From positions 248,001 through 312,000 of IMG/VR virus record IMGVR_UViG_3300023174_000039: a DNA stretch of 64,000 nt; one strand, written 5' to 3'. Position numbers and translations under genes: made by a program. This document shows, piece after piece, positions 704-21,192 of this stretch. Under the pieces are notes generated by a model. That model saw nothing but the letters and a program-made list of their open reading frames with translations. It was not told the origin of the DNA and ran no database searches. Each line of letters begins with the position of its first letter. The first letter of the stretch is position 1.

Positions 704-1231
704 TACTCTGTCAAAGTTCACATGATTTGGGCATTTCCAATGTGCGTATTGTCGGGTTGCTTTAGCCTGTTGTGTATGTACCAGCTTGATACCCTGATTG
801 CCTGTGTACACAGGACCACCGGCGCTTTGCCATTGTGTGCCAAAGTGATATTCATATGCTGGTTCACGATAGTCCGGATGCCATGAAAAATCAAAACTAT
901 GTTGATCAATTCCTGCAGGAATCCGCCAGTTATCTACTGTAGACAATCTTGTGATAGTACGATCTACATGATAGTGTGTTTCAGTATAGCCCGCAGCAGG
1001 CACAAGATACACACCTGCATCTGCTTGATGTTGGCTAGGCCAGGCATGTCGCTGATGAGCTTGCCAAGGAACAGGCTCCCAAAGAAAATCCCACTCTCTA
1101 AGATCTGCTAAGTATGTGATCCACCAAAAGAACCTTGTGCGACTCAACTGCTGTGCATGCCCAATATCACTTGCTTCACGCTCATGAGCAAACAACCCTG
1201 GCTTCTTACCTGAATAAAAAATATCAAACAT
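2..1231 (-). CDS. Repeat-containing protein (Trp/His/Pro-rich 65-aa repeats), runs off the left edge; not in the ORF track
   Basis: Minus-strand frame from ATG at 1231 (in-frame TAA upstream at 1250-1252) reads MFDIFYSGKKPGLFAHEREASDIGHAQQLSRTRFFWWITYL... and stays open to the window edge. It contains repeats of DYSWHPxPxDPPYIYHFPxQxQSASGVTYTVPGATEIKL. Confidence 0.85.
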   Translation of the reverse strand, partial: MFDIFYSGKKPGLFAHEREASDIGHAQQLSRTRFFWWITYLADLREWDFLWEPVPWQAHQRHAWPSQHQADAGVYLVPAAGYTETHYHVDRTITRLSTVDNWRIPAGIDQHSFDFSWHPDYREPAYEYHFGTQWQSAGGPVYTGNQGIKLVHTQQAKATRQYAHWKCPNHVNFDRVDYSWHPDPLDPPYIYHFSSQYQSASGVTYTVPGATEIKLIDAFQVTTLPCKDNWLIPDSVSKSTVDYSWHPNPLDPPYIYHFPDQWQPASGVTYVVPGATEIKLVDAFQVTTLPCNQHWFIPDSVATASVDYSWHPDPFAPPYIYHFPDQWQSASGVTYTVPGATEIKLVDAFQVTTLPCKDNWSVPATIKVDSVNYSWHPNLLDPPYIYHFPSQYQSASGVTYTVPGATEIKL

Positions 1232-2336
1232 GATTAGAATAGACGAAATTTACAACAACACTTTTTGGCCCTGGATTAATAATCAAATCCCTGGCACTAG
1301 AACATACTTCTGTGATCCACCTGGCCGCAGTGATCCAGATGCATTGTTTAACTTTGGTCGAGATGACATTCCCGAAAACGATTTTGTGTTTTTCCATGAT
1401 CAAGAACCTGTGCATTTAGATCTTCATAGACCTTTGTTTACACAGGTCAGAGAGTACACCGAAGACATTAGAAAAAGCAACGGCGATGTCAAAAAAGGCG
1501 GGCATGTAATTGTCAGCGAGCATGGAGAATACGTGCGTGAGTTGTGTCGTGCATACGGATGGAAGAGCCATTATTACTTTTATCATGGATGGGCTTGCAA
1601 GGATTGGTTTCGAGGATATGATAAAACTTTCTTGATCCCTCGAGCAAAAGACAGAGCTCCTACACGCACATTTATGAGTCCTAATAGGATTGTTGCCGGC
1701 AAACGAGATCACAGAGTTTTGTTTTTGTATAATGTATTTAAGCACGGGCTAGATCAAAATTATATTTCGGCTCCTAGAATATGTCCTTACGAAAATGTAG
1801 ATATTTCACAGATAGCACTCAAGTATAATAACATATATCCTGACATAGAGCAAGTGTTCTTGGCAGCAGAATTGCCTAGATTGTTTGCCGGCGAAGACAC
1901 TCAGATCATGACCAGCTGTTGGTTGGGCAACTATGCAGAAGCACAAGACAGTTTGGTGTATGTTCCTACAGAGACTGTGTACTTTGGCAAACGATTACAC
2001 ATCACTGAGAAAACATTCAAGGCAATTGCCTTGGAAATGCCATTTGTGCTGGTAGCGCCTGCACACAGTTTGGAGTACATGCGCAGTTATGGATTCCAAA
2101 CATTTGATGGTATATTTGATGAGAGCTATGATCAGGAAACGGATGATAACAAACGTATTGAAAAAGTTACTCAGCTACTAAAAGATCTAGATAATTTATC
2201 CGTAGCAGAACGTCAACAGATACATCGTGCTTGCTTGCCCATTGTTCAACACAATTTTGAACACTTTTATGGCACCGGATTGGAAAACATCCTGTGGCCT
2301 GAACTGATCAACATGCTGAATGAACTTCGTAGCTGA
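1230..2336 (+). CDS. Glycosyltransferase-like protein, TEK family (GT10/fucosyltransferase-like C-terminal motif)
   Basis: PTETVYFGKRLHITEKTFKAI...PF...L...GFQTF...DESYD resembles the GT10 donor-binding ENxxxxxYxTEK motif; three paralogues in the window. Confidence 0.55.
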   Translation: MIRIDEIYNNTFWPWINNQIPGTRTYFCDPPGRSDPDALFNFGRDDIPENDFVFFHDQEPVHLDLHRPLFTQVREYTEDIRKSNGDVKKGGHVIVSEHGEYVRELCRAYGWKSHYYFYHGWACKDWFRGYDKTFLIPRAKDRAPTRTFMSPNRIVAGKRDHRVLFLYNVFKHGLDQNYISAPRICPYENVDISQIALKYNNIYPDIEQVFLAAELPRLFAGEDTQIMTSCWLGNYAEAQDSLVYVPTETVYFGKRLHITEKTFKAIALEMPFVLVAPAHSLEYMRSYGFQTFDGIFDESYDQETDDNKRIEKVTQLLKDLDNLSVAERQQIHRACLPIVQHNFEHFYGTGLENILWPELINMLNELRS

Positions 2337-3474
2337 TTCAATCATCAAAGGTCGGCCATACCCTGCACTGGCACAGCATCAAGCTATACCTTACACACAG
2401 GGCTGGAGAGAATTTGGAAAACATTGGCCACATACTACTCCTGCTGAGTTATTTGGACACATGAGTGATCATGGGTACCAGTATAGTTTGACCACAGAAG
2501 GCAACGGGTACTATGTAATTGGGCTGGGATTCTTTGATTTCACCATTGATTACTTTGCTCTTGTTGACCGTGCATTACTGCAAAGAATTCAGCAAAAGCT
2601 AGTGACTGTGCTGTTTTACTACCACGAAGGCGATAATCCGCACAACATCAAACAGCGTCTGGATTCATTATGCCAATTGCATGGATTGTCAACCGATTGC
2701 TATCGCTTTGTTAGCGGTAACACTGCTGCCAATTCAATCCCGGGCTTTGTGTACTTTCCTGATCATGAACTGTTGTTCTGGCGCAGGAATCAAGATGTAG
2801 CACCTGTTGTGTTGCACACTAACACAAGGCCATATACATTTGTCGCACTAAGCAGAACACACAAATGGTGGAGAGCAGCCATCATGGCAGACCTGTTACA
2901 AAGCAACATGCTGTCACAGAGTTTGTGGAGTTACAACACTGAGTTGCCACTGGGAGATGATCCTGCGGACAATCCCATAGAACAACTGCCCAATGTTGAT
3001 GTTGATGTGTTCATGACAAACGGACCATACAGATGTGACACATTAACAGTGGATGAACACAACAATCATGCATTAACAGTACCCGAGCATTACACGGATG
3101 CATATTTTAATGTTGTAGTAGAAACACACTTTGATGCTGACGGATCTGGTGGTGCTTTCCTAACTGAAAAAACATTCAAACCCATAAAGAATGCACAACC
3201 ATTTGTGCTGGTTGCACCAGCTGGTAGTTTACAATGCTTACGTGAGCTAGGATATCGTACATTTGATTCCGTGCTGGACAATAGCTACGATTTGGAAACA
3301 AACAACACTCAGCGTTGGCTCAAAGTAAAACAAACATTACAACAAATACAACAAGATCCACACGGCATTTTTTTACGCTGTCGTGATGATATACTGCACA
3401 ACCAGCAGTTATTTCAATCCACGAAACTGGACAGATTAAATACTTTACTAAAGAACCTATATGAACAAAATTAA
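2320..3474 (+). CDS. Glycosyltransferase-like protein, TEK family
   Basis: VVVETHFD...FLTEKTFKPI...PFV...LRELGYRTF...DNSYD; paralogue of 1230..2336. Confidence 0.55.
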   Translation: MNFVADSIIKGRPYPALAQHQAIPYTQGWREFGKHWPHTTPAELFGHMSDHGYQYSLTTEGNGYYVIGLGFFDFTIDYFALVDRALLQRIQQKLVTVLFYYHEGDNPHNIKQRLDSLCQLHGLSTDCYRFVSGNTAANSIPGFVYFPDHELLFWRRNQDVAPVVLHTNTRPYTFVALSRTHKWWRAAIMADLLQSNMLSQSLWSYNTELPLGDDPADNPIEQLPNVDVDVFMTNGPYRCDTLTVDEHNNHALTVPEHYTDAYFNVVVETHFDADGSGGAFLTEKTFKPIKNAQPFVLVAPAGSLQCLRELGYRTFDSVLDNSYDLETNNTQRWLKVKQTLQQIQQDPHGIFLRCRDDILHNQQLFQSTKLDRLNTLLKNLYEQN

Positions 3475-4486
3475 CTCCTACACCAGCTGGCAACCTCTTG
3501 AAGAGGTCATTGTGGGTCGCGCCTACTCACCTGATTACTTTGACTTTATTGACAATCCACAAGTGCGTAATCAACTGCAACAGATTCTCTACGAGACTGA
3601 AGAAGACTTGAACGGCCTACAACGAACCATTGAAAAGTATGGTGCTCGAGTACGTCGTCCTAACTTGCCCAGTAAAGACTCGTTTATTTGGCACCAAACA
3701 GAGGGCGGAGGTGCTCCGCTGCCGCCACTGACACCACGCGATTGGCAAATCACCATGGGCGACAAACTGTTGCGGGTGCTCAACATGGAAGAACTAGATG
3801 ACATCTGTGCCGACTTTGGCGATCAAGTTGTTAACCCTCACAAGAGTCGGTGGGACGAAGACTGTATCTTAAATGGTGCGAGTGCCAGCTGTATTGTGCG
3901 TGTGGGTCGCGATGTGTTCTTTGACAACTCAGATTTTTTACGTCCTGATCAAACCAAGTGGATTGTGGACAATGTGCTAGGAGAAGGGTATCGTGTTCAC
4001 GAAGCTATCACAGACGGTCATGGAGATGCTGTGTTTGCTATTCTCAAGCCCGGTGTGTTGCTATCCAGCAAACACGATGTGAACTTGGATCTGGCCAAAG
4101 ATTTTCCTGGCTGGGACGTTTGCAAGATCTGGGACAGTTCAATCTGGGCTGCCATGGAAGTGGGCAAGTTCAAATACGAGCAAACTCCTGGTGCTTGGTA
4201 TGTGCAAGGACAAACACCCACAGCTGAGTTCACAAAGTTTGTGGACACATATTTAAACAAGTGGACTGGCTTTGTGGCCGAAACTGTGTTTGATGTCAAC
4301 TGCCTGGTACTGGATGAAGAAAATGTTATCTTCAGCGCCTACAACCGAGAAGTGTTTGACTACTGTAAAAAACATCGTATCAATCCCATTATCAGTGAAC
4401 TGCGCCACAGCTACTTTTGGGACGGTGGCATCTCATGCTGTACACAAGATCTACGTCGTCGTGGCGGCCTAGAAGATTATCTATAA
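3461..4486 (+). CDS. Amidinotransferase (glycine/inosamine-phosphate amidinotransferase family)
   Basis: N-terminal NSYTSWQPLEEVIVGR, PRD motif, HGD (catalytic His), DVNCLVLDE, C-terminal GGISCCTQDLRR (catalytic Cys). Confidence 0.85.
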   Translation: MNKINSYTSWQPLEEVIVGRAYSPDYFDFIDNPQVRNQLQQILYETEEDLNGLQRTIEKYGARVRRPNLPSKDSFIWHQTEGGGAPLPPLTPRDWQITMGDKLLRVLNMEELDDICADFGDQVVNPHKSRWDEDCILNGASASCIVRVGRDVFFDNSDFLRPDQTKWIVDNVLGEGYRVHEAITDGHGDAVFAILKPGVLLSSKHDVNLDLAKDFPGWDVCKIWDSSIWAAMEVGKFKYEQTPGAWYVQGQTPTAEFTKFVDTYLNKWTGFVAETVFDVNCLVLDEENVIFSAYNREVFDYCKKHRINPIISELRHSYFWDGGISCCTQDLRRRGGLEDYL

Positions 4487-4508: not shown

Positions 4509-5177
4509 ATGAAAATATTGGTCAATGGCGACAGCAACATGTGCGGCGAAGAACTTGAAGACCGCAGTCTGGGTATATCATCACAGGTGGCCAAGATATT
4601 GGGTGCGGATATCAACAATCTTAGTCTCAGTGGCAGTAGCAATGATCGAATATACAACAGCACCATGGATTATGTTCTTAATCAGCCCACACCAGATCTG
4701 GTTCTGATTGGCTGGAGTGAAATGTGTCGTGTGCAATGGTTTTTGGATGATGTGCATCCGTTTGGTGAGTTTGTGGAAATAAACAACCTGGGTGTGGGAC
4801 GTCGTGAGTATCCAGACCATTATGCCAGGCGTCTAGAAAGATGGCACGAAATCAGCAACAATCTAGAATTTCGTACACATCTCAGTTACTACTGGCACGA
4901 ACGCATATATAACTTACACAAGTTTTTGCAAAACCGATGTATTAATCATTTGTTTTTTCATTCATTTCATGACTTCAAAGTAACTGATGCAAATGATCAG
5001 CTTGACTGGTCCAACTGTTTTATGGATCCTTACAGCTGGGACAACACCTATGTGCATTGGTGTGCAGATCAAGGATACAAAGAAATAACGCCTGGATGGT
5101 ATCATTATGAACCTGCGGGACAACGTGCGTGGGCCGAACGCATCGTTGAGTATATTAAACAACACAATATTATATGA
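4509..5177 (+). CDS. SGNH/GDSL hydrolase-like protein
   Basis: N-terminal ILVNGDS, NxSxSGSSN block, C-terminal HYEPAGQ. Confidence 0.65.
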   Translation: MKILVNGDSNMCGEELEDRSLGISSQVAKILGADINNLSLSGSSNDRIYNSTMDYVLNQPTPDLVLIGWSEMCRVQWFLDDVHPFGEFVEINNLGVGRREYPDHYARRLERWHEISNNLEFRTHLSYYWHERIYNLHKFLQNRCINHLFFHSFHDFKVTDANDQLDWSNCFMDPYSWDNTYVHWCADQGYKEITPGWYHYEPAGQRAWAERIVEYIKQHNII

Positions 5178-6289
5178 TTTATTCCGTTGACCAAATTCGA
5201 CATCTACATTTAGAAATAAGCAGTTTATGCAATGCCGCGTGTCCGTTGTGCCCTAGAAATTTCAATGGCTATAAACACAATGCAGGATACACAGAGCACA
5301 ACATGTCATTGGCAGAGGCACAAAAAATATTTCCCGTGGAGTTTGTGCAACAACTAGAGGTCATAGTGATCAATGGGAACTTTGGCGATGCTGTAATGAA
5401 TCCAGACACTGTGCCAATTGTTAGATATTTTAAAGAACACAATCCCAAGATACATATCAATATCAGCACCAATGGTGCCGCAAGAGATGCCAGATTCTGG
5501 AAAGACCTGGCAGCATCTGATGTTGAAGTGAGTTTTTGTATTGACGGCGTTGATGATTTCACGCACGGACTGTATCGACGCAACACAATGTACAGCACAA
5601 TCATGCGTAACTCTGCTACATTTATAGCTGCCGGAGGACGAGCTAACTGGAAGATGATTAAGTTTGATCATAATGGTCCATTTCAGGAACAGGCCCATCA
5701 GCTCAGCATACAAAGAGGATTCACGAATTTTTCACTGATCAACGACGGACGAGACATAGGACCTGTTTACAATGACCAAGGCGATTTACAATACACCATT
5801 GGAGAGGCACGGATCGATTGGCAGCCACCTGCAAGAATTGAACCGTTGTTAGAAATGAATTTTGATGAAAAATTCAAAGGTAATCAGATTATCTGGGTCA
5901 AGAAAGAAGAGATCAAAGAAATCCACTGTGAAGTTGCAGTATCAAAAAGTGTATATGTCAGCAGTACCGGAGATGTGTTCCCTTGTTGTTACATGGGCAT
6001 AAATCCTGCTGAATACAGAAACAATACCAGTCACGGATACAGCATGGAACAAATCAATCAGATTATGGCCAAGAACAATGCACTAGAGCACGATCTTGCC
6101 ACCTGTATTGCATGGTTTGATCACATTGAATCCAGCTGGAACAAAGACTCATTTGAGAATGGCAGATTACTGACCTGCAATCAATCATGCGGAGGCGACA
6201 ATCAGCGTCCGCAGTTTCATGTCAAAGAAGCCACAATATACTATAACGATGTTAACGGGTCCCAAACCCAGGATCAGGCCACCGACTAG
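5174..6289 (+). CDS. Radical SAM protein with C-terminal SPASM/twitch-like domain
   Basis: CNAACPLC (CxxxCxxC), STNG, C-terminal C...GDVFPCC...CNQSC. Confidence 0.9.
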   Translation: MIYSVDQIRHLHLEISSLCNAACPLCPRNFNGYKHNAGYTEHNMSLAEAQKIFPVEFVQQLEVIVINGNFGDAVMNPDTVPIVRYFKEHNPKIHINISTNGAARDARFWKDLAASDVEVSFCIDGVDDFTHGLYRRNTMYSTIMRNSATFIAAGGRANWKMIKFDHNGPFQEQAHQLSIQRGFTNFSLINDGRDIGPVYNDQGDLQYTIGEARIDWQPPARIEPLLEMNFDEKFKGNQIIWVKKEEIKEIHCEVAVSKSVYVSSTGDVFPCCYMGINPAEYRNNTSHGYSMEQINQIMAKNNALEHDLATCIAWFDHIESSWNKDSFENGRLLTCNQSCGGDNQRPQFHVKEATIYYNDVNGSQTQDQATD

Positions 6290-7061
6290 CATTTGGGTTC
6301 GGGGCATAAAAGTTTGTTAAATCAATGGGCCTTGATCCTGGCTCATAGTTTTGATATGTGTCAACTACCAGTGCGCTCATCATTCGATTGTTGTAAGAAC
6401 TAAAATGATTGCATCGACGGTCTTGTATCATGTAGTGCTTTATTATTTCTGCGTCAGTTCCTTTGCCCTCACTGAAACTCACATGAATCAATGGTGTTGT
6501 AAACACCACTCCGGGTAGCGCGGACTTGGAGATTTCTACTGTAAACGGATAGTTGTTAAAATGTATTTGTTTGATGTCTTTAAAAGTCCTGTCTATTTCG
6601 TGGAACCATTGCACTTGTGACCAATCTTGAAAAGAGTAATCAATCAAGTCTGCGGCCCAGGATTGTAGGGATTTTGCCAGCGTTGTTTTGTACTTGTACT
6701 TGGCATCATCTGAGTGCGGTTTCCAATCCAGGTTTAACATTTCATTTCCCACATCTCCATTTTCGCTATTGTACCTGGTGCTGTTGGTGTGACAAAATAC
6801 CATGAGTTCAATGGATTCAATCCATTCAGGATCATACTCCATATGATCAAATAGTTGTTTACGAGAATAATACCAACTGCGACCAGCAAATCCAAAACTG
6901 TACAAGTTCAACTCCAATGCCTCCGCAGTTAAATCCAGCCAACTCTTATTTTTTGGGTCAGAGTCTTTCTGCTGGGCCATCTTGTGCGGTATCACACTGT
7001 CCTCATTCCAACAACTGCAGAAACTGTCACCTACAAATACTATGTTTTTTTTAAATGGCAT
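6252..7061 (-). CDS. SGNH/GDSL hydrolase-like protein (probable start 7061, MPFKKNIVFVGDSF)
   Basis: VFVGDSF block, AGRS, C-terminal NHFS. The ATG at 7061 abuts the upstream gene's stop. Confidence 0.6.
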   Translation of the reverse strand: MPFKKNIVFVGDSFCSCWNEDSVIPHKMAQQKDSDPKNKSWLDLTAEALELNLYSFGFAGRSWYYSRKQLFDHMEYDPEWIESIELMVFCHTNSTRYNSENGDVGNEMLNLDWKPHSDDAKYKYKTTLAKSLQSWAADLIDYSFQDWSQVQWFHEIDRTFKDIKQIHFNNYPFTVEISKSALPGVVFTTPLIHVSFSEGKGTDAEIIKHYMIQDRRCNHFSSYNNRMMSALVVDTYQNYEPGSRPIDLTNFYAPNPNASRWPDPGFGTR

Positions 7062-8463
7062 TGTACCAGCCTGCCAATCTTGGGTAAGTTGCCGCAAAGT
7101 TTTTGCCTCGACGTTGATCGTATTGTTTAAAGAAGCTTTTGAAATCTTTTTGTAATGCCAATACGTTGGCTTCTTCAACATTGCCAGCAAACTCATCTGT
7201 TGTGTGCGCTATGTACTTTTCTTCATGGGGCGCAGTTACTTCCAGCAGATATTTTGAATAGCGTTCAATGTGGTCAATTTCAATATCTGCAAACAACTTT
7301 TTGATATCTGGACCCTTTAAGAAATCTGTAATTTCGTGTGCGTACTGCTCACGCAGTTCTCTAGGTAGTACTACTATGCTCTGAAATGTGGGGAAGCGCA
7401 CAGGATTAACGCTCAGCATGAGTCCACGACTGTGATTGCTATTGGGAGGTGCTGTGCGTTTGCGGTCTGCAAGCCAGTACAGGAACTCAGTAAATCCGTC
7501 GGCAGCGGCTGCACTCAGTGTGCCACATATGCCAGTATTGGCAATCACACCTGAGTTCAGTACCAGGTCTAGATTGCTGTTCCACAGTTCCCAGTCCAGC
7601 CCATCACGCACATACTCCATCTTGTTGCCTGTGCTTTCGGCACTAGTATATACCCATACAGGCACATCAATGCGACTGCATGCGTCTAAGAAACGTTTTA
7701 GTGTGTCTTGATCGTAGGCCAAGTTAGTGGTCATTTCTATACGACAATCAGTCTTGGAAGTGTTGTTGGCCAGCCAATCCAGTAACTTCCAGGTGTGACC
7801 TGACATCATTGGCTCGCCGCCACTGATTCGTATTTGTTTGATGGTTTTGTGCAGGCTAGAATCCCACCATTTAAAGAACGCATCGGCATAGGGGTTGTCC
7901 TCACCAAATGTATATCCTATTGCTTCGTCGCCAGTGGTTAGATAATGATTACGATGATCAGTTGGTAAATTTGTATAAGCACCGTTTTTGCGAATATCTT
8001 TAGCCCAGGTTGTGCTGATGGTTGGGGCACAATAACTGCATCCTAAATTGCAAGTGCGATCAAAACATATTTCCAAATAAGTCAGATCATAATCGTTTTC
8101 AGAACTGGAAGTGAACGCAGTGTTCAGCAACTCTGGACTCATTTGGCCACCCCAGGTGGTCCACACACGATCGCTGAGACCATCTGGTTCAACGTCTTCC
8201 ATTACCCAGCAGAATTGACAATTCTTGGGCTTGAGTCCCTGTTGCATCATGAGTCTCTCTTGTTTTTTAATGGGAGTATTGTGCAGGGCCATTGGGTTGG
8301 TCTTGATTGCTTCCAGGTCTATTAAATGTGGAGGATTATGGTGACAGCTTGTGGTCCATCCTTGGCTGAGCCATAGGCTGCTGTTGTACCATTTAGATCC
8401 ACAAAAACTTGGACTTTTAGAATCCAGGTTGTCAATCTTCCATTGTTTCATATTAATGCTCAT
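7051..8463 (-). CDS. Radical SAM protein with N-terminal twitch-like domain (subtype A)
   Basis: FCGSKW...SCHHNPPH...CQFCW, then CNLGCSYC, SGGEP, YVRDGLDW, C-terminal YDQRRGKNF. Confidence 0.9.
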   Translation of the reverse strand: MSINMKQWKIDNLDSKSPSFCGSKWYNSSLWLSQGWTTSCHHNPPHLIDLEAIKTNPMALHNTPIKKQERLMMQQGLKPKNCQFCWVMEDVEPDGLSDRVWTTWGGQMSPELLNTAFTSSSENDYDLTYLEICFDRTCNLGCSYCAPTISTTWAKDIRKNGAYTNLPTDHRNHYLTTGDEAIGYTFGEDNPYADAFFKWWDSSLHKTIKQIRISGGEPMMSGHTWKLLDWLANNTSKTDCRIEMTTNLAYDQDTLKRFLDACSRIDVPVWVYTSAESTGNKMEYVRDGLDWELWNSNLDLVLNSGVIANTGICGTLSAAAADGFTEFLYWLADRKRTAPPNSNHSRGLMLSVNPVRFPTFQSIVVLPRELREQYAHEITDFLKGPDIKKLFADIEIDHIERYSKYLLEVTAPHEEKYIAHTTDEFAGNVEEANVLALQKDFKSFFKQYDQRRGKNFAATYPRLAGWYNAI

Positions 8464-9110
8464 TGTATTCCTGTCAATTTATTTTTTAATACCGGGACAA
8501 TTACTTGATTGTAGTATCGTTGATGTCCGTCGTTGTTGGGATGGTCGCACACTGATGATTCTGCTTTGGTCCACTTGAAATCAGCAAAAGATAAAAACTG
8601 CGAATCACGCAGTCGATCAAGCACATGGTTATTCAGAGAAGGTATGTGTACAGGGTCAGGCATACACCAGAGAAAATCTGCACCCACCAGCTGGGCAGAA
8701 GCATATGCAGCCAACAATGTTGTGATTGAACTAGCATGCCCTATTCTATCACTGTACAAATATTTGTAGTAGTGTTCTACGGCTGTTTCAAGTTGAGGAA
8801 ATGTGCGATCTGACTGCCAGTTTGGGCCAATTGATTCGGCTGCATTTTCAGTGCGTCTGATTTGAATTCGAGCGGCAAACGACACACAACATATAACCAA
8901 TTTGATATCGTCGGTTAGTTCTTGATGTAATCGTTCCACAATAGATGCATTGCTGTAGCCTGGGCGGGAACGATTGTCCACTGTGACAGCAAACTCTTTT
9001 TGTATTAAACTAGGCCATGCATACTCACTTGGTTTAGCAATATAACCCATGGGGGTATCCGAGCATCCTTGACCAAAGGTAAAACTATCTCCTAATACCA
9101 CAATTTTCAT
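8460..9110 (-). CDS. SGNH/GDSL hydrolase-like protein
   Basis: LGDSFTFG, NRSRPGYSN, C-terminal DHPNNDGH. Confidence 0.75.
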   Translation of the reverse strand: MKIVVLGDSFTFGQGCSDTPMGYIAKPSEYAWPSLIQKEFAVTVDNRSRPGYSNASIVERLHQELTDDIKLVICCVSFAARIQIRRTENAAESIGPNWQSDRTFPQLETAVEHYYKYLYSDRIGHASSITTLLAAYASAQLVGADFLWCMPDPVHIPSLNNHVLDRLRDSQFLSFADFKWTKAESSVCDHPNNDGHQRYYNQVIVPVLKNKLTGIQ

Positions 9111-10586
9111 TTAGCTACAAACCTTTACATTGTACAACTGTTCAAATCTATCGGCATCAGCACGGTCATTTACCATGGGTTCTCCACGTATGTTTAGACT
9201 TGTGTTGAGCAACATGGCACAACCAGTTTCTTCATGCCAGGCTTCTAGTAGACGTCTGATCCCCGATCCGTCTGCGGGAACTGTTTGCACACGACTAGTG
9301 CCGTCATAATGAACGATAGCAGGAAATAAGTCACGATGCCTGCAACGAGCGATGACTTGCATATACCTACTGTTAGGGAAACCGCTAGGCATATCAAAAT
9401 AATTATGAACATGCTCCTCCAGAATAACTGGCGCAAATGGCCTGAATTGTTGTCTGCGTTTGATTGCATTTACACGTTCCTTTATGTCTGCCCCACGTGG
9501 GTCTGCCAATAATGATCTATTGCCCAAAGCCCTGGGACCAAATTCGGCACGACCACTGGCCACACCCACAATTTTATCCCGTAAAAGACCAGCCACGAGA
9601 TCGCCGACAGGATAGTGACCAGGGATATTGTGGCCCAAATAGGCATTGGTCCAATGTATCTGTTTCCTGTAAGCCAATGCTGCCGCACCAAGGCTACTGC
9701 CAGCATCGCCAGGACAAGGCATAATCCATATGTTATCAAAGTATTTTCCCAAGTTACGATTGGCACTACAGTTAAGAGCCACACCGCCCATGTACACTAA
9801 ATTGTTAGACCACGCAAAGTCACGTGCTCTACGCATTACATTATTGATCAACTGTTCTGCAATGCATTGAGCACCGGCAGCAATGTCATAATCTGACAGA
9901 TCTTTCAAGTATTTACGATCTATTCCTGTGTGTAGATTTTCACGGAATCTTATTTGATCTGAGTCTTTTACTAGTGTTTTCATACCAGTAGCCTGTGTGG
10001 CATCGCCATAGGCTGCCATGCCCATCAAGATGTATTCTTCGTCTAATGGGCGTAGGCCAACGCTGCCAGTAGCCGCAGAGTAGAACAGTCCAATTGAATG
10101 TGGATAACGTTGTGTCCAAAGTTTTCGATATGTTGCATAACCTTTTTGATCATATTCTGCTGCCCAGATTGTAATGGTATCAAATTCACCCACAGCATCA
10201 ATGACCACCACTGTGGCACGATTGTATGGCGAGGTTTGAAATCCTGCTGCCGCATGGCAAGCATGATGGTTGTGTGCGCTTGTGGTAGGTGAGCTCAGCA
10301 GAGCCCGAGGCACTTGTTGTTGTAGCACTTGATCAAGTGTGACTTTGTTCCACTCAATGCCTTGACCAGCATACCATTGTCGTAGTTGTTTAATCCAAGG
10401 ACGCTCGTAGTAGGCCACATGATCCACGCTATCAGTCAATGCATCCTCAATCAGTCCAGAGCAAATATCAGCGTCATTCTTGAGTTTTGAATAACGCTCA
10501 GAATGCCCGGCAAAAAGAATATCGCCCTGATGAATTACAGTAGCGGCAGCGTCGTGAAAACCTGCTGAAATTCCAAGTATTTTCAT
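9111..10586 (-). CDS. O-carbamoyltransferase (NodU/CmcH/TobZ family)
   Basis: HD, ERYSK, HHACHA, DAVGE, LMGMAAYG, GGVALNC, GDAG, EFGPRALGNRS, FRPFAP, RVQTV and LNTSLN..GEP motifs. Confidence 0.93.
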   Translation of the reverse strand: MKILGISAGFHDAAATVIHQGDILFAGHSERYSKLKNDADICSGLIEDALTDSVDHVAYYERPWIKQLRQWYAGQGIEWNKVTLDQVLQQQVPRALLSSPTTSAHNHHACHAAAGFQTSPYNRATVVVIDAVGEFDTITIWAAEYDQKGYATYRKLWTQRYPHSIGLFYSAATGSVGLRPLDEEYILMGMAAYGDATQATGMKTLVKDSDQIRFRENLHTGIDRKYLKDLSDYDIAAGAQCIAEQLINNVMRRARDFAWSNNLVYMGGVALNCSANRNLGKYFDNIWIMPCPGDAGSSLGAAALAYRKQIHWTNAYLGHNIPGHYPVGDLVAGLLRDKIVGVASGRAEFGPRALGNRSLLADPRGADIKERVNAIKRRQQFRPFAPVILEEHVHNYFDMPSGFPNSRYMQVIARCRHRDLFPAIVHYDGTSRVQTVPADGSGIRRLLEAWHEETGCAMLLNTSLNIRGEPMVNDRADADRFEQLYNVKVCS

Positions 10587-10685: not shown

Positions 10686-11756
10686 TTAAGTTCCTTGTGT
10701 GATACACTGTACCTGACGATCACGAAAGTCAGCATCGCTCCAGTGATAGTTGTATATAGCACTAGAGCAACTGGTTGTTATTTTATACACATCTAAATAG
10801 TTATTTAACATGGACCAGATTGTGGCAGCATCTGTTGTGCCAAAACTCCGGATCAAATTCACTTGTGCCACTCTAGGATGGCCAATGGTGAGTGCTTTGT
10901 TTTCGGGGTCAAATCCATTGGCCACAAGCCATTCTCGGAACTGAGCCAGTTCTTTTATCTGCCACGGATAAGCGCCTGGATCTCTTGCCCACTCTATATC
11001 AAAGTCGCCGGCAGCTTCTGTTTGTGCTCGCAGTGTTGTGGTGGTCAATTCGTTTATGCGACTGTCGCGACCTTCATCATGGAACACTTCCCAATGATGT
11101 TTGCCCACTGCTTTGTTGACGCCCACATACACACCGCCTAGGCTGCGATTGATTGTTTCTATGCCAAACAGTTCATAATCTTCTGGCTGTAATTCGAATC
11201 TTGGTGCATTTAACCAACACATGAGTTGGCTGGGACGCACCCATTCAGGTGCATGTTGTGCCTTGCGCATGCTGAGCACAAGACTTTCATACTCGTGACA
11301 CAACAAGTTTAATTGACGAATGTGCCAACGTGTGGCAGCATCTGCGGCTGTGTAAAACGGACTCATTGCACCTGATACGCCTTGAAGGTCTTCAAAATAA
11401 CGGTGCAATCGATTTGTTTTGCTGTGTATGAGTTTGCCTCCAGGCAACCCATCGCCTACAGCACCTGCAGTAATGGTATTTGTGGTATCAAAATGATCTG
11501 TAATTTGATAGCCCATGTCCGCGGCATTGATGGCGGCAATTGACTGATTGATTTGATCACATATGTACTCTGCTGTTCTAGCACCTTGATGCCATCCAAA
11601 CCAACAGTAGTTCTTTTCTAAATGAAGATTGTTTTGTAATATATCATTCAGTGCCGCCAGCCAACGACGGCTAAGGCTGTGATCTTCTACATCTATGTAC
11701 ACTGGCAATAGGTCACCTGTGTGCATGTTTCTCAATGTTATTTCAATTTGTTCCAA
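10686..11756 (-). CDS. Hypothetical protein in the modification cluster
   Basis: 356-aa ORF tiling between neighbours; no family recognised. Confidence 0.75.
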   Translation of the reverse strand: MEQIEITLRNMHTGDLLPVYIDVEDHSLSRRWLAALNDILQNNLHLEKNYCWFGWHQGARTAEYICDQINQSIAAINAADMGYQITDHFDTTNTITAGAVGDGLPGGKLIHSKTNRLHRYFEDLQGVSGAMSPFYTAADAATRWHIRQLNLLCHEYESLVLSMRKAQHAPEWVRPSQLMCWLNAPRFELQPEDYELFGIETINRSLGGVYVGVNKAVGKHHWEVFHDEGRDSRINELTTTTLRAQTEAAGDFDIEWARDPGAYPWQIKELAQFREWLVANGFDPENKALTIGHPRVAQVNLIRSFGTTDAATIWSMLNNYLDVYKITTSCSSAIYNYHWSDADFRDRQVQCITQGT

Positions 11757-13056
11757 TTTGATCCCACCATTCTTTGACGTCAGTCCGTGCGCTCAATATC
11801 TTTGCCATATCAGTAGGCGCTGTGCGTATGCTTTCTAATTTTAACACACGAGCATGGCCTTTTGCAAGCCCTGCACGATAAGTATCTGGCCATTGTTCCT
11901 CAAACGTTGGTCTAGACTGTAGTTGCAACAACATGTCACGCATGACTTGTGTGCGGCATTGCGGCACTAGATCGTTTATCCAGGAATTCAGCAACGGTCT
12001 GGGCAGAGCCAATGGGCTCATTACAATATCTGGACCAAAGCTGAATATCACCTTGGCCAGCAATTCTACCCCATATTCTTCTGCAAGTTGTTCCACTGCT
12101 AGTATTTCTGTCATGCCCGGCAAGGTCAGCGTAAAGTCCAGGCGCATTTGTCTGCGGTTCTGCTGTATGGCTACGCCTTGTGCAAAGTTGTTTCTGAACT
12201 GTTCGTAGTCAAGTCCTGTGCGGATGTATTCTCCTGTGGCTCCTGTTCCGTCAAGACTGGCGCATATCTGCCAGTCGCGGATACAAGCCAAAATATCCCG
12301 ATATAGATTACAGCCCCTATAGTCAACGCGACTAAGATTGGTATTATACCTTGCATATACTCTACCTCCATCTCCTAATTCCACTATTCTTTTCATGTAG
12401 CGCCAGTGCTGTTCGTACATGAGTGGCTCGCCGCCTACCCAGTATATTTCTTCTACTCTGTGTTCTTCTACTGCTTGTGCAAACTCCGCTTCGATCTGTT
12501 GGTCTTGAAAAGCACTTATTTGAGTTCTTATTTCTGGACGCATCCAATTGTTCTTGGGATTTGACCAGTCTGTCATTTCATTTTGTTTTTGTTCTGTTTC
12601 CCACGCACTGCTCAACATATCGCCACAGGTTCTGCATTTAAAATTGCACAGGTTTGAAAAACGATAATCCCAGCTTACAGGCTTCATTGTTGTGTAGCCA
12701 GTGGCGTCTGTTGTGGCTGCTATGTCTTCGTACTTGTGCTTGAACAAATGCCAGAAGTAGGTTCTGTACACATCTGTGTTCAACAGCTTTGAATTGCATA
12801 CATCACACTCAGGCAAAGTTTCACCGGCCAACATGCGACGACGCACTGATCGCATGTGATCACTGTTCCAATGCTGTTCCAAGGTAATGGGAATGTACCG
12901 GCCTGTGCCTGCCGCAGTGTCTATGTACTGTTCAAAACTCTGTGCTGGTTCTCTAGAGGCACAGCACATTCTTCGTTCAGTTTGGGGGCTTAGGTATGTG
13001 TGCGTCCATGGGGCCATACACAATGATTCGGGTTTATTTTGACTCTGCATATGCAA
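11743..13056 (-). CDS. Radical SAM protein with N-terminal twitch-like domain (subtype B)
   Basis: LCMAPWTH...MCC...CDVC, CNFKCRTC, GGEP, YNTN, EYIRTG. Confidence 0.9.
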   Translation of the reverse strand: MHMQSQNKPESLCMAPWTHTYLSPQTERRMCCASREPAQSFEQYIDTAAGTGRYIPITLEQHWNSDHMRSVRRRMLAGETLPECDVCNSKLLNTDVYRTYFWHLFKHKYEDIAATTDATGYTTMKPVSWDYRFSNLCNFKCRTCGDMLSSAWETEQKQNEMTDWSNPKNNWMRPEIRTQISAFQDQQIEAEFAQAVEEHRVEEIYWVGGEPLMYEQHWRYMKRIVELGDGGRVYARYNTNLSRVDYRGCNLYRDILACIRDWQICASLDGTGATGEYIRTGLDYEQFRNNFAQGVAIQQNRRQMRLDFTLTLPGMTEILAVEQLAEEYGVELLAKVIFSFGPDIVMSPLALPRPLLNSWINDLVPQCRTQVMRDMLLQLQSRPTFEEQWPDTYRAGLAKGHARVLKLESIRTAPTDMAKILSARTDVKEWWDQIGTN

Positions 13057-13981
13057 TTATGGGATTTATTATTTCATTTATTATCCGAGACTCTGCCAAA
13101 TTATGATCATAAAATCGATTGTGATTGTGTTCTAACTTTTGTAATGTCAATTGGTCGTGAGGTACTGGATCAAAATTCTTTACGGTACTGACCAATGCTG
13201 TCAATCTCTCGGTGTAATCACTGATATTATCATAACTTTCGTCAAATAGATTGTCAAATGTTTCAAATCCCTGGGACTGGAGATATTTTAAATGTCCCGC
13301 TTGTGCCATTACCACAAAAGGATGATAAAAAGCCATGGGTTTAAATGTCTTTTCTGTGACAAATATTTCAGGAGCATCCACAAGTGTTTCTGCCACTATG
13401 CTAAAATATGTGCTATCATACCAGTCTGGGTTGAAGTGTCGCTGAAAGTTTACATCATTCATATCATTGTCATTGGGCAAGGTTCTACCATGCATGGTAT
13501 AACTCCATACCAGTTGATCTAGTATTTCTGCCAAGTGCACCACCAATGCGTCGCGATGCTGCCGCCGCTGACGCATCGGCAGCAGTGCCAGTTTTTGATA
13601 GGTCCTATTAGGTTGATAACCGGACCAGTTGGCTTTGTTTAGGCTGGCTTCATTGTACCAAAACCAATTCTGATTGTGCAAAACAAAACAATTCTCTACT
13701 GGGTCAGGGAATTTATGCATTATCTGTGGTGACTCCCATAAATTATCTAATACAATTTTATAAGAATCATTGAGGTACGGTCTATACCAGTCTGTATAAT
13801 ACCAGGCTGAAGAACTGGAGTGTCTAAGAGCATTTGCAACTAACACATGATCATTGCGGTTATAATCAACACCCTCTTGCCAATTTACTATATCAAAATA
13901 TGGTTCTACCAATCTCTGTAGTAGTACTTGATGAAATGATGTCCTGTCATCCTGGTTGATTAATAATTTAAGTCGCGGCAT
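13034..13981 (-). CDS. Glycosyltransferase-like protein, TEK family
   Basis: FSIVAET...FVTEKTFKPM...PFVV...GFETF...DESYD. Confidence 0.55.
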   Translation of the reverse strand: MPRLKLLINQDDRTSFHQVLLQRLVEPYFDIVNWQEGVDYNRNDHVLVANALRHSSSSAWYYTDWYRPYLNDSYKIVLDNLWESPQIMHKFPDPVENCFVLHNQNWFWYNEASLNKANWSGYQPNRTYQKLALLPMRQRRQHRDALVVHLAEILDQLVWSYTMHGRTLPNDNDMNDVNFQRHFNPDWYDSTYFSIVAETLVDAPEIFVTEKTFKPMAFYHPFVVMAQAGHLKYLQSQGFETFDNLFDESYDNISDYTERLTALVSTVKNFDPVPHDQLTLQKLEHNHNRFYDHNLAESRIINEIINPIIAYAESK

Positions 13982-15191
13982 GATTATATGAATAATTTAT
14001 CAATGCTGAAAATTCTGGTTCAACCACAGCTAGGTCTTGTTCACGTTTACGGTCCAGGTCACGTATGCGCATACGCATGATGTTGCCGTCAGTGGATGCA
14101 CCCTTCATCATGAATTCCACAATACGATCAAACTCTTCACGGTACTGAGCAGGTACATCAGCAGAGTTTAAATGGTCTGCAATGGCTGTTTTGGCATCAT
14201 CAGGCAGGGTAGCAATAGAGAAGTACCAGGCATCATGCATCATGTTCCAGTACACAAAGTCAAATTGTTGTTCTACAATCCAGTGGGCCAGTTGATCAAT
14301 ATAGCGCACATTAAAGATATTCACTGTGCTACAGCATTGCAGTTGAATATTGGGATAGTCTTCCCTTAATAAACGAAAACGATCAATATTGAACACCACG
14401 TCTGCCCACACAGCATTTGAACGCTGATACTCAAAGCGTTCGCGCAAGTCATCAATCGAAAATGCAATTTCTACTGTTTTGAAATGCTTCCAGATAGCTT
14501 CTGCTTGTTCAGGAAACTGTGTGCCATTTGTGTTGTAGTGTATTTCAACTTGATGTGCAATACCACGATCCACTAGACCCTGTAACATATTGAAGTGTTC
14601 CTGGATCATGAATGGCTCGCCACCAGTGAATTCAATGTAACGAATGTCAGTCAGAATGTGATCAATTTCTGCCCAGAACGTTTCATTTTCTCTGGGCCAG
14701 GCGCCTGCTTGTAGCATTTGATAATGAAAGCTGGCTTTCTTCTCGTCGCCACGCAGTTGTGTGAGTTCTTCAGCGGCAAATTGACTTGAGCTCCAGGATC
14801 CACATATGCGGCATTTTAAGTTGCAAATGTTGCCCAGTTTGAGATCCATGAACATCAAGGGCTTGGCATCTGCTGTCCAGGCCTGATCGTCAATCACGTG
14901 CTTGAGTCGGTTGAGTGTGTGCATGCGTTTGCTGGTGCGTCCTGAACGCTCTTCGTTCCAGCACTTGCGACATGTCTGTGGCTTTTCGCCATCCAAGAAC
15001 TGTTGCCGTAGACCGCGCATGTGAGTGCTGTTTTGTATGTCTTTAAAGTTGGCAGTCATCAAGCTGAATTTCACGTTGTTGTCATCGACAATTTCGTCAT
15101 CAGCCAAACAGCAAGGGCGCACTGTGCCAATCGGGCTAGCTTCAAGACTGACCCAAGGTAGTACGCAGAATTTTTCGTGTGGTAATTTCAT
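13968..15191 (-). CDS. Radical SAM protein with N-terminal twitch-like domain (subtype B)
   Basis: FCVLPW...PCC...CRKCW, CNLKCRIC, TGGEP, YNTNG. Confidence 0.9.
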   Translation of the reverse strand: MKLPHEKFCVLPWVSLEASPIGTVRPCCLADDEIVDDNNVKFSLMTANFKDIQNSTHMRGLRQQFLDGEKPQTCRKCWNEERSGRTSKRMHTLNRLKHVIDDQAWTADAKPLMFMDLKLGNICNLKCRICGSWSSSQFAAEELTQLRGDEKKASFHYQMLQAGAWPRENETFWAEIDHILTDIRYIEFTGGEPFMIQEHFNMLQGLVDRGIAHQVEIHYNTNGTQFPEQAEAIWKHFKTVEIAFSIDDLRERFEYQRSNAVWADVVFNIDRFRLLREDYPNIQLQCCSTVNIFNVRYIDQLAHWIVEQQFDFVYWNMMHDAWYFSIATLPDDAKTAIADHLNSADVPAQYREEFDRIVEFMMKGASTDGNIMRMRIRDLDRKREQDLAVVEPEFSALINYSYNHAAT

Positions 15192-16477
15192 TTTAATGCT
15201 TTCAATTCAGGAATAACATCCAGGATGTTTTCTTTTCTAATTTCGTCCAGCTGTTGAGTCTTGCTCCAGAATTTAGGGATCAAATGACTGTTGTCTGTAG
15301 CTTGCAAATAGTTAATAGCTGATTCAAAACCCTGTGTGGCACGACCCAACCGGTCCTGGGGGCGTAACCATGCCAGGTGCTGTTGATATAACTCAATCAA
15401 TTCAGCTTTGTATTCTGGTGTGGCAATATCAATTCTATAATACGCAGGGTCTTGCAGTATGTTTACGTTTAGATCCTGAGGGTTTAATAGACCTTTTTCA
15501 ACCCAGTCACGATGAAACTCAGGCAAGTGTTGAGCATTCATAATGCTCAACGTGGGCGAAATATAAAAATCTACTTCAGGACAAATGCTCAGCATGTCTC
15601 TGCGATTTTGTTCCACCACTGACCAGTCTGTGCCCTTGCGTATGTATTCGCCACGTGCACCAGAATCGTCTAGACTTGCGCCCACTGCCACTGATTGAAA
15701 CTGTTTCCAGTATTCAAAAACTGAGTTACCTTTAAGGTCTGTGTGTGTGAAGTTTGTGTTGTATATTAGTCGTACATCAAATCGTTGGCGTTTGACCAGC
15801 TCGTCAAGAATATGATAGTGTTCTTCCATCAACAGCGGTTCGCCGCCGGCAAAATAAATTTGTTCTACATAGTCTAGATGCGGCTCTAGTTGTTCCCACA
15901 CATCTGTTTCTGTGCGGCCAGCATAGTTGAGAACTTTGTTTTTTTGTTTCCAATCACCGCCGGCCAATTTGGCTTGATCTTGATACCACGAACTACTAAA
16001 GATATGACCACAACTGCGGCAACTTAGATTGCACAGATTACTGAAGCGAATGTCCCAGTAGGTCATTTCAAATTGGTCAGTATGTCCTGTAGAATCTGTA
16101 GCTTGTACTCGATCCACATGGTGCCCATGGTGCTTGTTTGCTGATTGTCGCCCTGTGAAGAAACCCGATTGTTCTTGTTCGTAGCAACGTCCGCAGGCAG
16201 CATTGGGTATTTCACTCAGCATGTCCTTGCGCAATTGGCGCTGTGCTGGGCTATTCCATATTTCTTTAAGAGTGTTTGTGCGACAATTGCCAATTTGCCC
16301 CACACCCATTTCGGCGTGACAGCACGGGTATGCTTCGCCTGTGGGGTAGGCATGTAAATGAATCCAAGGATAGATACAGAAAGTTTTGGATTCTGTCAAC
16401 AAGAATCTTTCACGTTCTGTCAGTGCGCTCATGTCTCCACGCACTAGATCACTGCTGTTGTATTTGTATTGTGTCAT
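15188..16477 (-). CDS. Radical SAM protein with N-terminal twitch-like domain (subtype B)
   Basis: FCIYPWIH...PCC...CGRCY, CNLSCRSC, AGGEP, YNTN. Confidence 0.9.
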   Translation of the reverse strand: MTQYKYNSSDLVRGDMSALTERERFLLTESKTFCIYPWIHLHAYPTGEAYPCCHAEMGVGQIGNCRTNTLKEIWNSPAQRQLRKDMLSEIPNAACGRCYEQEQSGFFTGRQSANKHHGHHVDRVQATDSTGHTDQFEMTYWDIRFSNLCNLSCRSCGHIFSSSWYQDQAKLAGGDWKQKNKVLNYAGRTETDVWEQLEPHLDYVEQIYFAGGEPLLMEEHYHILDELVKRQRFDVRLIYNTNFTHTDLKGNSVFEYWKQFQSVAVGASLDDSGARGEYIRKGTDWSVVEQNRRDMLSICPEVDFYISPTLSIMNAQHLPEFHRDWVEKGLLNPQDLNVNILQDPAYYRIDIATPEYKAELIELYQQHLAWLRPQDRLGRATQGFESAINYLQATDNSHLIPKFWSKTQQLDEIRKENILDVIPELKALK

Positions 16478-20266: not shown

Positions 20267-21192
20267 CCTTCTTGCTTGCGTATGACATCAATCTCACGTG
20301 TCATAGCACCTTGGTTGTGCCAATTGCTACGATAATGGCGTTTGAAAAATGCGCTTTGCTCTTGTTCCAAAATAGCCATGGGCAAATCTAACTGAGTTCC
20401 TAAATCAACACCCAGTTGGTTGCTGAGTAATCGCGGTTGGCTGTCTTTAACTGTGAGCCATAATTCAGATAATGCATCAAACCATTGCACCTGTTTGTGA
20501 TCCCAATTGGTAAGCATGGTCATGTATGTGCCTTGTCGTGCGCCAGCAATGGCCCATTCACCGTGGTCAACATCTGTACCCACATTATGCCAGATGGTCA
20601 AGTTCTCTAGGTTTTTCTTGTGTGCTTGTTCTTTGAAGTCTTCCACTGTGGGCTTGGCGCCTTTGTTCAGACACATCTTTACACCCTCACGGAAGCCGGC
20701 ACGCCAAGCATGAAATGCATCACCGTTGGGATAAGTTGTTGAGTAGCAGTCGTACATGGGCCAGTACAAGGGATCAAAACAAAACTCTACTTCAGTTTCT
20801 GTACGGCCGTCTGTGGCTTCGTGTGTGCGCATGTTCATTACAAATTCTTGTGTCCACGAACTTAGACCTCCGTTGCCATACATGAGTCCATTGACGTGAT
20901 TACGGGCTCTCCAGCGGAACACTGCTTTTTCATACTCTGCAGTGGGAAATGACAGTGTTTGATTAAAGAACTCTGGGTCAGGCATGTTGTCGCCATCAAT
21001 GAGAATAAAGCGTTCAGTATCAGACGCTTCGGCAGCTGCCTTGTGTGCGGCATCACTTCCTTTGACCCCATCCACACGCTTGGCCCAAGGTACCATGTTG
21101 CGTATCTTGACCCAAAATTCTTCTTTCTGTGGTTCGTCGTAGGTTAGATAAATGCAGTCTAGATCTGCTACATCAATTTGATTCAAAGCCAT
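20260..21192 (-). CDS. Putative GT-A fold glycosyltransferase
   Basis: N-terminal strand plus YDEP, AHKAAA helix and hydrophobic-DxD motif FILIDGDN. Confidence 0.55.
   Translation of the reverse strand: MALNQIDVADLDCIYLTYDEPQKEEFWVKIRNMVPWAKRVDGVKGSDAAHKAAAEASDTERFILIDGDNMPDPEFFNQTLSFPTAEYEKAVFRWRARNHVNGLMYGNGGLSSWTQEFVMNMRTHEATDGRTETEVEFCFDPLYWPMYDCYSTTYPNGDAFHAWRAGFREGVKMCLNKGAKPTVEDFKEQAHKKNLENLTIWHNVGTDVDHGEWAIAGARQGTYMTMLTNWDHKQVQWFDALSELWLTVKDSQPRLLSNQLGVDLGTQLDLPMAILEQEQSAFFKRHYRSNWHNQGAMTREIDVIRKQEGW

Follow-up and report, generated by a model that had tools for sequence, protein, structure and literature searches.

A divergent, largely viral type of amidinotransferase encoded next to GT-B glycosyltransferase-like genes in a freshwater jumbo phage, and its possible part in making a guanidino sugar

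What does a phage make with an amidinotransferase whose gene overlaps that of a glycosyltransferase-like protein? The question is raised by positions 3461-4486 (plus strand, ATG start, 341 aa) of a 64,000-nucleotide stretch of DNA that we call the window, which covers bases 248,001-312,000 of the 331,654-bp IMG/VR virus record IMGVR_UViG_3300023174_000039 (estimated 95% complete). Amidinotransferases have known roles in the chemistry of creatine, streptomycin, saxitoxin, cylindrospermopsin and polyamines. In phages they have been annotated since 2010, none with an assigned substrate (PMC2853527, PMC12801897). We predict from the sequence that the gene product is a catalytically competent amidinotransferase. 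Judged by its residues and alignments, it is a member of a divergent branch of the AGAT/StrB1/SxtG/HsvA family that we name FWDGG-type, and it is the orthologue of no characterised enzyme. For its acceptor we tentatively propose an amino sugar, and for its product a guanidino sugar, a reading that we hold to be possible and somewhat short of probable.

The assignment to the amidinotransferase family, already made in the original prediction, is supported by sequence, profile and fold. A phmmer search of the protein against the PDB finds StrB1 (2.8e-13), AGAT (~1e-12), SxtG (1.5e-9) and HsvA (4e-9), with the match falling in three blocks, at the N-terminus, around the His and around the C-terminal Cys. 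A search of the same structures with a profile built from 55 full-length relatives matches only these four amidinotransferase types (E 3e-34 to 1e-30). The AlphaFold2 model built on the alignment of the 55 relatives (predicted local distance difference test, pLDDT, 88.2; predicted TM score 0.90) indicates that the fold is a pentein alpha/beta-propeller nearest to the transferases of the superfamily. The top seven Foldseek matches are all amidinotransferases (E 1.6e-20 to 1.4e-19; by structure, 1bwd 1.6e-20, 6u1r 2.4e-20, 5wpi 3.2e-20 and 1jdw 7.2e-20), and the hydrolases DDAH, arginine deiminase and agmatine deiminase begin at 2e-9. The catalytic His and Cys motifs had been described as intact, and they are. 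The His motif G-H187-G-D189 aligns with His303/Asp305 of human AGAT, His187 aligning also with StrB1 His227, and the Cys motif G-G-I-S-C326-C-T aligns with AGAT Cys407 and StrB1 Cys332. Among the 55 sequences, the guanidinium-binding Asp94 (AGAT Asp170) and the catalytic His187 are each conserved in 54, and the guanidinium-binding Asp189 and the nucleophile Cys326 in all 55.

What sets the branch apart is the loop before the Cys, which reads R-H-x-x-F-W-D-G-G instead of the canonical L-G-G-G, and a family-specific segment of ~40 aa at residues 225-268, partly of low model confidence. An exhaustive search of representatives with the protein finds 701 clusters at E<=1e-3, of which only its own cluster exceeds 50% identity, the next relatives being at 35-43%. 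The PHROGs match is to an unnamed family only, and a Pfam search of ten longer relatives (421-572 aa) finds no informative fused domain. The branch is abundant in viral contigs; when the genomes of 185,579 prokaryotic species are scanned for its motif, with an alignment narrower than the 55-sequence one, it appears on just 12 contigs, all from metagenome-assembled genomes (MAGs). FWDGG-type enzymes are almost exclusively viral, and curated models miss them. In the literature we found no description of the branch or of its coupling to GT10-like transferases.

Could the enzyme be a hydrolase (an arginine- or guanidino-group deiminase) or another non-transferase? The position of the AGAT triad Asp254 (StrB1 Asp179) is not conserved: it is Ser141 in an ungapped alignment or Asn138 in the HMMER alignment, and the column among the 55 members is mixed, led by S13, N8, D7 and A5. 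The ~40-aa insert and the F-W-D motif before the Cys speak for the same idea, as do 2 of the 55 relatives that weakly touch the Pfam ADI model PF02274. Every significant sequence match is nevertheless to a transferase, the transferase fold matches are 11 orders of magnitude better than the hydrolase ones, and the N- and C-terminal AGAT/StrB1 motifs are present, and we consider a hydrolase very improbable. Given the variable triad-Asp position, the chemistry may differ in detail from that of AGAT; candidates to stand in for the triad Asp are Glu274 and Asp321. We also considered the donor-binding Arg322 of AGAT as a clue to the donor. It is not conserved in our protein, and since it is also absent from SxtG and HsvA in the alignments that we read, it is uninformative on this point.

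The reading frame is not a chance one and is under selection, as is clear from a word search that finds 1668 homologues, the best 120 of the 1668 being 83-94% identical and lying on contigs as long as 350 kb, and from relatives on ~600 viral contigs. The overlap with the upstream gene, which the original prediction had pointed out, is borne out at 14 nt: the amidinotransferase ATG lies that far inside the open reading frame (ORF) 2320-3474, whose TAA is at 3472-3474. This ORF in turn overlaps the ORF 1230-2336 by 17 nt. We name the two upstream genes TEK1 and TEK2, and together with the amidinotransferase they form a tightly packed three-gene unit in which translation is probably coupled. A complex prediction for the TEK2 and amidinotransferase proteins scores 0.00, which counts neither for nor against an interaction. 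Signals for transcription are at or near background: sigma-70 promoter-like sites show no excess over chance in the window, terminator-like sites are slightly above chance only (10 against 5.9 ± 2.8 expected), and the T4 late motif TATAAATA has two exact copies in the window, which is chance level, none of them inside the island described below (Table 1).

That the amidinotransferase is coupled to two glycosyltransferase-like genes is supported by sequence, profile, fold and synteny. TEK1 and TEK2 are paralogues (25% identity; hidden Markov model, HMM, E 1e-23 to 6e-28), and TEK2 has 3344 homologues. Neither protein has a match in Pfam (Glyco_transf_10 included), NCBIfam or PHROGs, and an ESM Atlas feature search brings up GT10 at only 0.77-0.78, which we treat as a lead. 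In 23 TEK sequences, TEK1 among them, Arg179, Arg185, Glu268 and Thr282-Glu283-Lys284 are invariant. We take the Arg and E...T-E-K residues to be equivalent to Arg195/Glu249/Lys250 of the fucosyltransferase FucT, and the T-E-K motif is GT10-like. The TEK2 model (pLDDT 88.2) has a two-Rossmann GT-B fold, with VIA Z scores of 13.0 to the Helicobacter pylori alpha-1,3-fucosyltransferase (2nzw), 12.2 to the T4 beta-glucosyltransferase, 12.0 to the exostosin EXT1/2 and 10.8 to the T4 alpha-glucosyltransferase; the Foldseek E-values are ~1e-4 (T4 glucosyltransferases 1.2e-4). With the H. pylori GT10 enzyme, TEK2 shares the GT-B fold over 259 aligned residues and the E...T-E-K donor motif, but only 10% identity. 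From these findings we describe TEK1 and TEK2 as GT-B glycosyltransferase-like, nearest to the GT10 fucosyltransferases. The T4 beta-glucosyltransferase and the exostosin score nearly equal to the fucosyltransferase, so that the matches point to no one donor or acceptor for TEK2. A fold search of the ESM Atlas with TEK2 also finds a 705-aa viral cluster (90 members) in which a TEK-like GT-B fold (TM score 0.69) is joined to Epimerase/GDP-mannose-dehydratase domains, a natural fusion that ties the TEK fold to nucleotide-sugar chemistry.

The T4 glucosyltransferases among the top fold matches of TEK2 raise the idea that the genes hypermodify the phage DNA, with the GT-B enzymes glycosylating a modified base and the amidinotransferase making the adduct cationic. 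A ThyX gene at the border of the island fits this idea, and radical SAM enzymes, of which the island has several, take part in known thymidine hypermodification. We regard it as highly improbable. The 95%-complete genome has no ThyA-family pyrimidine hydroxymethylase (PF00303), no base-exchange or kinase/pyrophosphorylase genes are seen in the island, the fucosyltransferase and exostosin matches score equal or better, and the T-E-K motif is of GT10 type.

How stable is the arrangement? We compared 75 IMG/VR loci, all from this one phage lineage. The gene immediately upstream of the amidinotransferase is a TEK gene, usually with 4-41 nt of overlap, in 66/67 loci, and a carbamoyltransferase gene lies <=6 kb downstream in 67/67. 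Within <=10 kb upstream, at a distance of 5-7 kb, a short-chain dehydrogenase/reductase (SDR) is found in 56/58 loci and a DegT aminotransferase in 53/58. The median identity over the 75 loci is 83% for the amidinotransferase, which makes it the best-conserved gene of the island, 76% for ThyX, ~70% for the radical SAMs, 67% for the carbamoyltransferase, 51% for TEK1 and 48% for TEK2. A conserved amidinotransferase beside variable TEK proteins suggests a fixed chemical step feeding fast-evolving transferases.

The source of the DNA is an uncultivated freshwater jumbo myovirus with a T4-like capsid, in agreement with the phage origin first proposed. The window encodes a gp55-type late sigma factor, the gp46/47 nuclease, and baseplate wedge and hub proteins; the gp23 capsid protein in the same virus record is 68-72% identical to those of the jumbo phages PA5oct, Sinorhizobium Phosso and Vibrio 2.275.O; and metagenomes of lakes and other fresh water, from at least two studies, contain DNA nearly identical to it. 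We considered and rejected a cyanophage: there is no psbA, and the capsid is nearest to those of the three phages just named. The amidinotransferase gene sits within a conserved ~28 kb tailoring island beside the tail genes, which comprises an SDR, a DegT, two or three SGNH/GDSL-like proteins, a single O-carbamoyltransferase, four proteins of GT-B type and seven radical SAM enzymes (one SPASM and six N-terminal-twitch, or N-twitch). In Table 1 we list the island genes that lie in the window together with the other features that we located. ThyX, the SDR and DegT are encoded upstream in the genome. Counted over the whole genome, there are three SDRs, two DegT genes and five genes of the TEK family. 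The SDR matches Pfam Epimerase at 2e-44, and its best NCBIfam model is dTDP-glucose 4,6-dehydratase, below the curated cut-off; DegT matches its Pfam family at 6e-61, with PseC as the best NCBIfam model, also below the curated cut-off.

Table 1. Island genes and other located features; positions are those of the window unless prefixed C1 (genome).
Feature	Position	Strand	Remarks
Repeat protein, N-terminal 410 aa of 2047 aa	2..1231	-	~20 repeats; divergent from TEK1
TEK1	1230..2336	+	TEK2 paralogue
TEK2, GT-B glycosyltransferase-like, T-E-K motif	2320..3474	+	stop overlaps amidinotransferase start by 14 nt
FWDGG-type amidinotransferase-like, 341 aa	3461..4486	+	key residues D94, H187, D189, C326
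SGNH/GDSL-like protein	4509..5177	+	weak DUF6071 match
Radical SAM/SPASM enzyme	5174..6289	+	phrog_21308
Protein distantly related to GDSL protein 8460-9110	6252..7196	-	
N-twitch radical SAM paralogue	7051..8463	-	
GDSL-like esterase/acyltransferase	8460..9110	-	
NodU/CmcH-type O-carbamoyltransferase	9111..10586	-	Pfam 5e-49 and 2e-34
Conserved island protein, no assigned fold	10686..11756	-	Atlas search: sub-threshold leads only
N-twitch radical SAM paralogue	11743..13056	-	
Third TEK-family GT-B paralogue	13034..13981	-	HMM
N-twitch radical SAM	13968..15191	-	NF033640, E 4.7e-99, above curated cut-off
N-twitch radical SAM paralogue	15188..16477	-	
N-twitch radical SAM paralogue	16449..17801	-	
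Fourth TEK-family GT-B paralogue	17767..18891	-	HMM
N-twitch radical SAM paralogue	18875..20266	-	
Relative of the 2047-aa repeat protein, right-hand island border	20260..21192	-	HMM E 1e-13
T4 late-promoter motif TATAAATA	26217-26224	-	26 nt upstream of structural gene 24449-26191
T4 late-promoter motif TATAAATA	45706-45713	-	exact match
FWDGG-type paralogue	C1:227459-228514		
FWDGG-type paralogue	C1:167901-168965		
Short canonical StrB1-like amidinotransferase	C1:91857-92780		keeps triad Asp; 1.5 kb from fifth TEK-family gene

The repeat protein at the left edge of the window is the most variable product of the island. Its gene (genome C1:243088-249231; L004:9088-15231) has a start codon that overlaps the divergent TEK1 start by 2 nt, and it encodes ~20 repeats in tandem, each of ~95 aa. 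Trp (4.4%) and Pro (8.6%) are abundant in the protein, and the motif D-Y-S-W-H-P-D-P ... Y-I-Y-H-F ... Q-W-Q recurs; Pfam gives no match and PHROGs only a marginal one. Two other features of the window lie outside the island. A single ORF of 4936 aa (26994-41804, minus strand), rich in Thr, Gly, Ser and Asn, adjoins a baseplate wedge gene (41804-45271) and is presumably a giant fibre or baseplate-attached protein. A second radical SAM/SPASM gene of phrog_21308, the family of 5174-6289, occurs at 59758-60768 (plus strand), right after gp46/gp47 and far from the island.

What would the enzyme do in such an island? For AGAT and StrB1 it is established that the reaction is of the ping-pong type and passes through an S-amidino-cysteine (reportedly Humm et al. 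1997; Fritsche et al. 1998). By analogy with these two enzymes, Asp94 and Asp189 would hold the guanidinium of L-arginine, Cys326 would attack it to give a covalent S-amidino intermediate, with His187 as acid/base, and ornithine would leave. A primary amine would then take the amidino group and become a guanidine. The SDR and DegT near the amidinotransferase could supply a sugar amine, and the likeliest acceptor would be a nucleoside diphosphate (NDP)-4-amino-4,6-dideoxyhexose made by these two enzymes from a host NDP-hexose. An activated sugar of the phage's own making we considered and rejected, since the phage is without a nucleotidyltransferase. Alternatively, the acceptor could be such an amino sugar already within a glycan. 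The cationic guanidino sugar might then be carbamoylated, acylated or tailored by the radical SAMs, and the GT-B enzymes would install it on a macromolecule, either a virion protein or the host envelope. We also considered and rejected an aminocyclitol route of the streptidine or bluensidine type: the 95%-complete genome encodes neither of the cyclitol-forming enzymes looked for, 2-deoxy-scyllo-inosose (DOI) synthase and inositol-1-phosphate synthase (PF01761 and PF01658).

Outside the lineage, we surveyed 27 viral loci with homologues at 30-46% identity. A TEK-family gene lies within 2-8 kb of the distant homologue, here at 36-39% identity, in L082/L084, L083, L096, L110, L122, L124, L125, L159 and L168. 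This recurrence is unlikely by chance, since a tblastn search of 50,697 cultured phage records finds no match to TEK proteins. In the cultured phages nothing matches the island at the DNA level, and matches to the amidinotransferase and to the N-twitch radical SAMs number just three and four, respectively. An SDR is present in 7/27 loci and N-twitch radical SAMs in 5/27, and in L006 a DegT fragment abuts the distant homologue directly upstream. Some of these contigs have features of their own: FWDGG-type genes occur as tandem pairs in the unrelated viral contigs L106, L108, L111/L112 and L145, and L084 carries a full-length TctA tricarboxylate transporter subunit (1491-2927; Pfam 5.5e-94) and a DUF6267 protein.

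Another alternative is that the enzyme works by itself in metabolism and amidinates some free amine of the host (polyamines, glycine to guanidinoacetate, or lysine to homoarginine); the product might, for instance, serve to condense the DNA within the jumbo capsid or to reprogramme the nitrogen metabolism of the host. The polyamine amidinotransferase HsvA is one of the best matches by structure and by profile, many of the distant homologues are found on their own amid ordinary phage genes, and in Synechococcus phage S-SCSM2R a homologue was detected in the virion proteome (PMC12801897). The genome of our phage moreover has four amidinotransferase genes, three FWDGG-type and one canonical. In a quick maximum-likelihood tree, whose rows do not include StrB1, AGAT or SxtG, each of the three FWDGG copies belongs to a different deep subclade, which points to different specificities rather than recent duplication, and the canonical copy groups with CP220 and S-SCSM2R ORF309 (support 99). 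Four such paralogues suggest several acceptors. Against a free amine stand the start/stop overlap with a GT-B gene, kept throughout nearly all the lineage, and the recurrence of TEK genes near distant homologues despite their absence from the cultured records. We find this alternative distinctly unlikely.

Several observations weigh against our reading of the enzyme and its acceptor. The protein has no Pfam match at E<=0.1 and no NCBIfam match at E<=1, and to this is added the variable triad-Asp position. No residue-level argument separates sugar from non-sugar amine acceptors. The genome, at 95% completeness, has no sugar nucleotidyltransferase, and a 6-kb gene on the opposite strand, that of the repeat protein, lies between SDR/DegT and the TEK-amidinotransferase operon. 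The synteny evidence comes mostly from one phage lineage, and the related loci are not independent events; outside it, ~11/27 viral loci are without any sugar or radical SAM partner within 10 kb. A literature search found no natural guanidino-sugar glycan made by an AGAT-family enzyme, and we know of none. Finally, the association with N-twitch radical SAMs is at least as strong as that with GT-B proteins: in five Pseudobdellovibrionaceae MAG contigs, one with bacterial-looking flanks (glutamate synthase, LD-carboxypeptidase), a homologue is surrounded by as many as 12 genes for N-twitch radical SAMs per 21 kb, and a TEK gene is absent.

This last association raises the possibility that the amidinotransferase and the N-twitch arrays act together on a non-sugar substrate, either a peptide or protein, for instance the 2047-aa repeat protein, or a nucleotide-derived small molecule, and that the adjacency to glycosyltransferases is secondary. 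The Pseudobdellovibrionaceae pattern is repeated in the viral loci L085/L141, L116, L123, L145 and L160, where the homologue is inside an N-twitch array, and the marine virus contig MH319727 has an amidinotransferase and an N-twitch radical SAM within 8 kb. The genome of our phage has ~14 N-twitch radical SAMs, and five radical SAMs surround the amidinotransferase of Campylobacter phage CP220. A repeat-protein domain is also found beside the radical SAM array of one Pseudobdellovibrionaceae MAG (L099). On the other side, no RiPP (ribosomally synthesised and post-translationally modified peptide) recognition element or precursor is identified, and the presence of SDR, DegT, GT-B and carbamoyltransferase genes speaks for chemistry on carbohydrates. 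To our knowledge, N-twitch radical SAMs (NF033640) have no established substrate and no AGAT-family enzyme acts on proteins. We judge a non-sugar substrate unlikely, with enough in its favour to be taken seriously. Among the Pseudobdellovibrionaceae arrays (L095, L099, L101, L102), one includes a protein with an Asp/Asn beta-hydroxylase domain and another a B12-binding radical SAM.

The guanidino-sugar proposal can be widened to take in these arrays. One lineage of ~330-kb freshwater jumbo phages and, independently, some Bdellovibrio-like predators might encode an undescribed pathway in which FWDGG amidinotransferases, N-twitch radical SAMs, a carbamoyltransferase and GT10-like glycosyltransferases would build a guanidinylated, carbamoylated and radical-tailored cationic glycan or polymer that decorates the virion or remodels the prey or host envelope. 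As a whole this wider scheme is speculative, and we lean against it. Its product, if the scheme is true, would be a new class of biological guanidino-glycoconjugate. A guanidino sugar, if that is what the enzyme makes, would bring a permanent positive charge into glycochemistry in a new way, with consequences for the adsorption of the phage, the stability of the virion or the remodelling of the host surface. The separate branch of enzymes defined here comes with testable partners (SDR/DegT products as acceptors and GT-B proteins as installers), and its link to N-twitch arrays is a way into a large enzyme family without known function. An analogous module is available in culture, in phage CP220.

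Amongst known enzymes, StrB1, the L-arginine:inosamine-phosphate amidinotransferase of Streptomyces griseus (1BWD), is the best single-sequence and fold match (TM score 0.67). The two are alike in size (348 aa against 341 aa) and have in common the Cys, the His, two Asp, and the N-terminal W-x-P-L-E-E-V-I-V-G and C-terminal H/S-C-x-T-x-D-x-R-R motifs, and the substrate of StrB1 is an aminocyclitol, a sugar-like amine, which is the chemistry that we propose. They differ in that identity is ~20%, StrB1 keeps its triad Asp where our enzyme has Ser or Asn, and our enzyme has the extra ~40 aa and F-W-D-G-G in place of L-G-G-G. AGAT (1JDW), SxtG (6U1R) and HsvA (5WPI) have the same pentein fold and covalent-catalysis residues (profile E 3e-34 to 4e-33). 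At 380-420 aa, these proteins carry a large lid module from the PRD motif to the triad Asp, of which ours has about half; they act on glycine, a saxitoxin intermediate and polyamines, respectively, and none of the three is coupled to glycosyltransferases.

Amongst phages, a parallel in gene content is the CPT_0080-0089 module of Campylobacter phages CP220/CPt10, which includes a "possible glycine amidinotransferase" and has had no assigned function since 2010 (PMC2853527). In CP220 (L092, record 70690-79273) four radical SAMs, a hypothetical gene, the amidinotransferase and a further radical SAM lie next to gp5/PAAR baseplate genes, and the module continues with two nucleotide-sugar-transferase-like genes and a PAP2 phosphatase. 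The likeness is that of a T4-like phage with radical SAMs, an amidinotransferase and sugar-transferase-like genes near baseplate genes. The parts differ: the CP220 enzyme is of canonical type in the tree, not FWDGG, and its profile match is split in two and reaches only 4e-20 and 3e-13; the annotation of its transferases is nucleotide-diphospho-sugar (GT-A) and not GT-B; and its radical SAMs match the 5174 type, not the N-twitch type. For the enzyme itself, a parallel is ORF266 of S-SCSM2R, a cultured T4-like phage, which has been interpreted as a "glycine amidinotransferase" by annotation only (PMC12801897). ORF266 is an FWDGG-type homologue (28% identity, profile E 1.9e-65) from another subclade than ours, in a phage that also has a second, canonical copy. 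It has no TEK or N-twitch radical SAM neighbours, and lies instead beside KdsA/KdsB, a glycosyltransferase and 2-oxoglutarate oxygenases.

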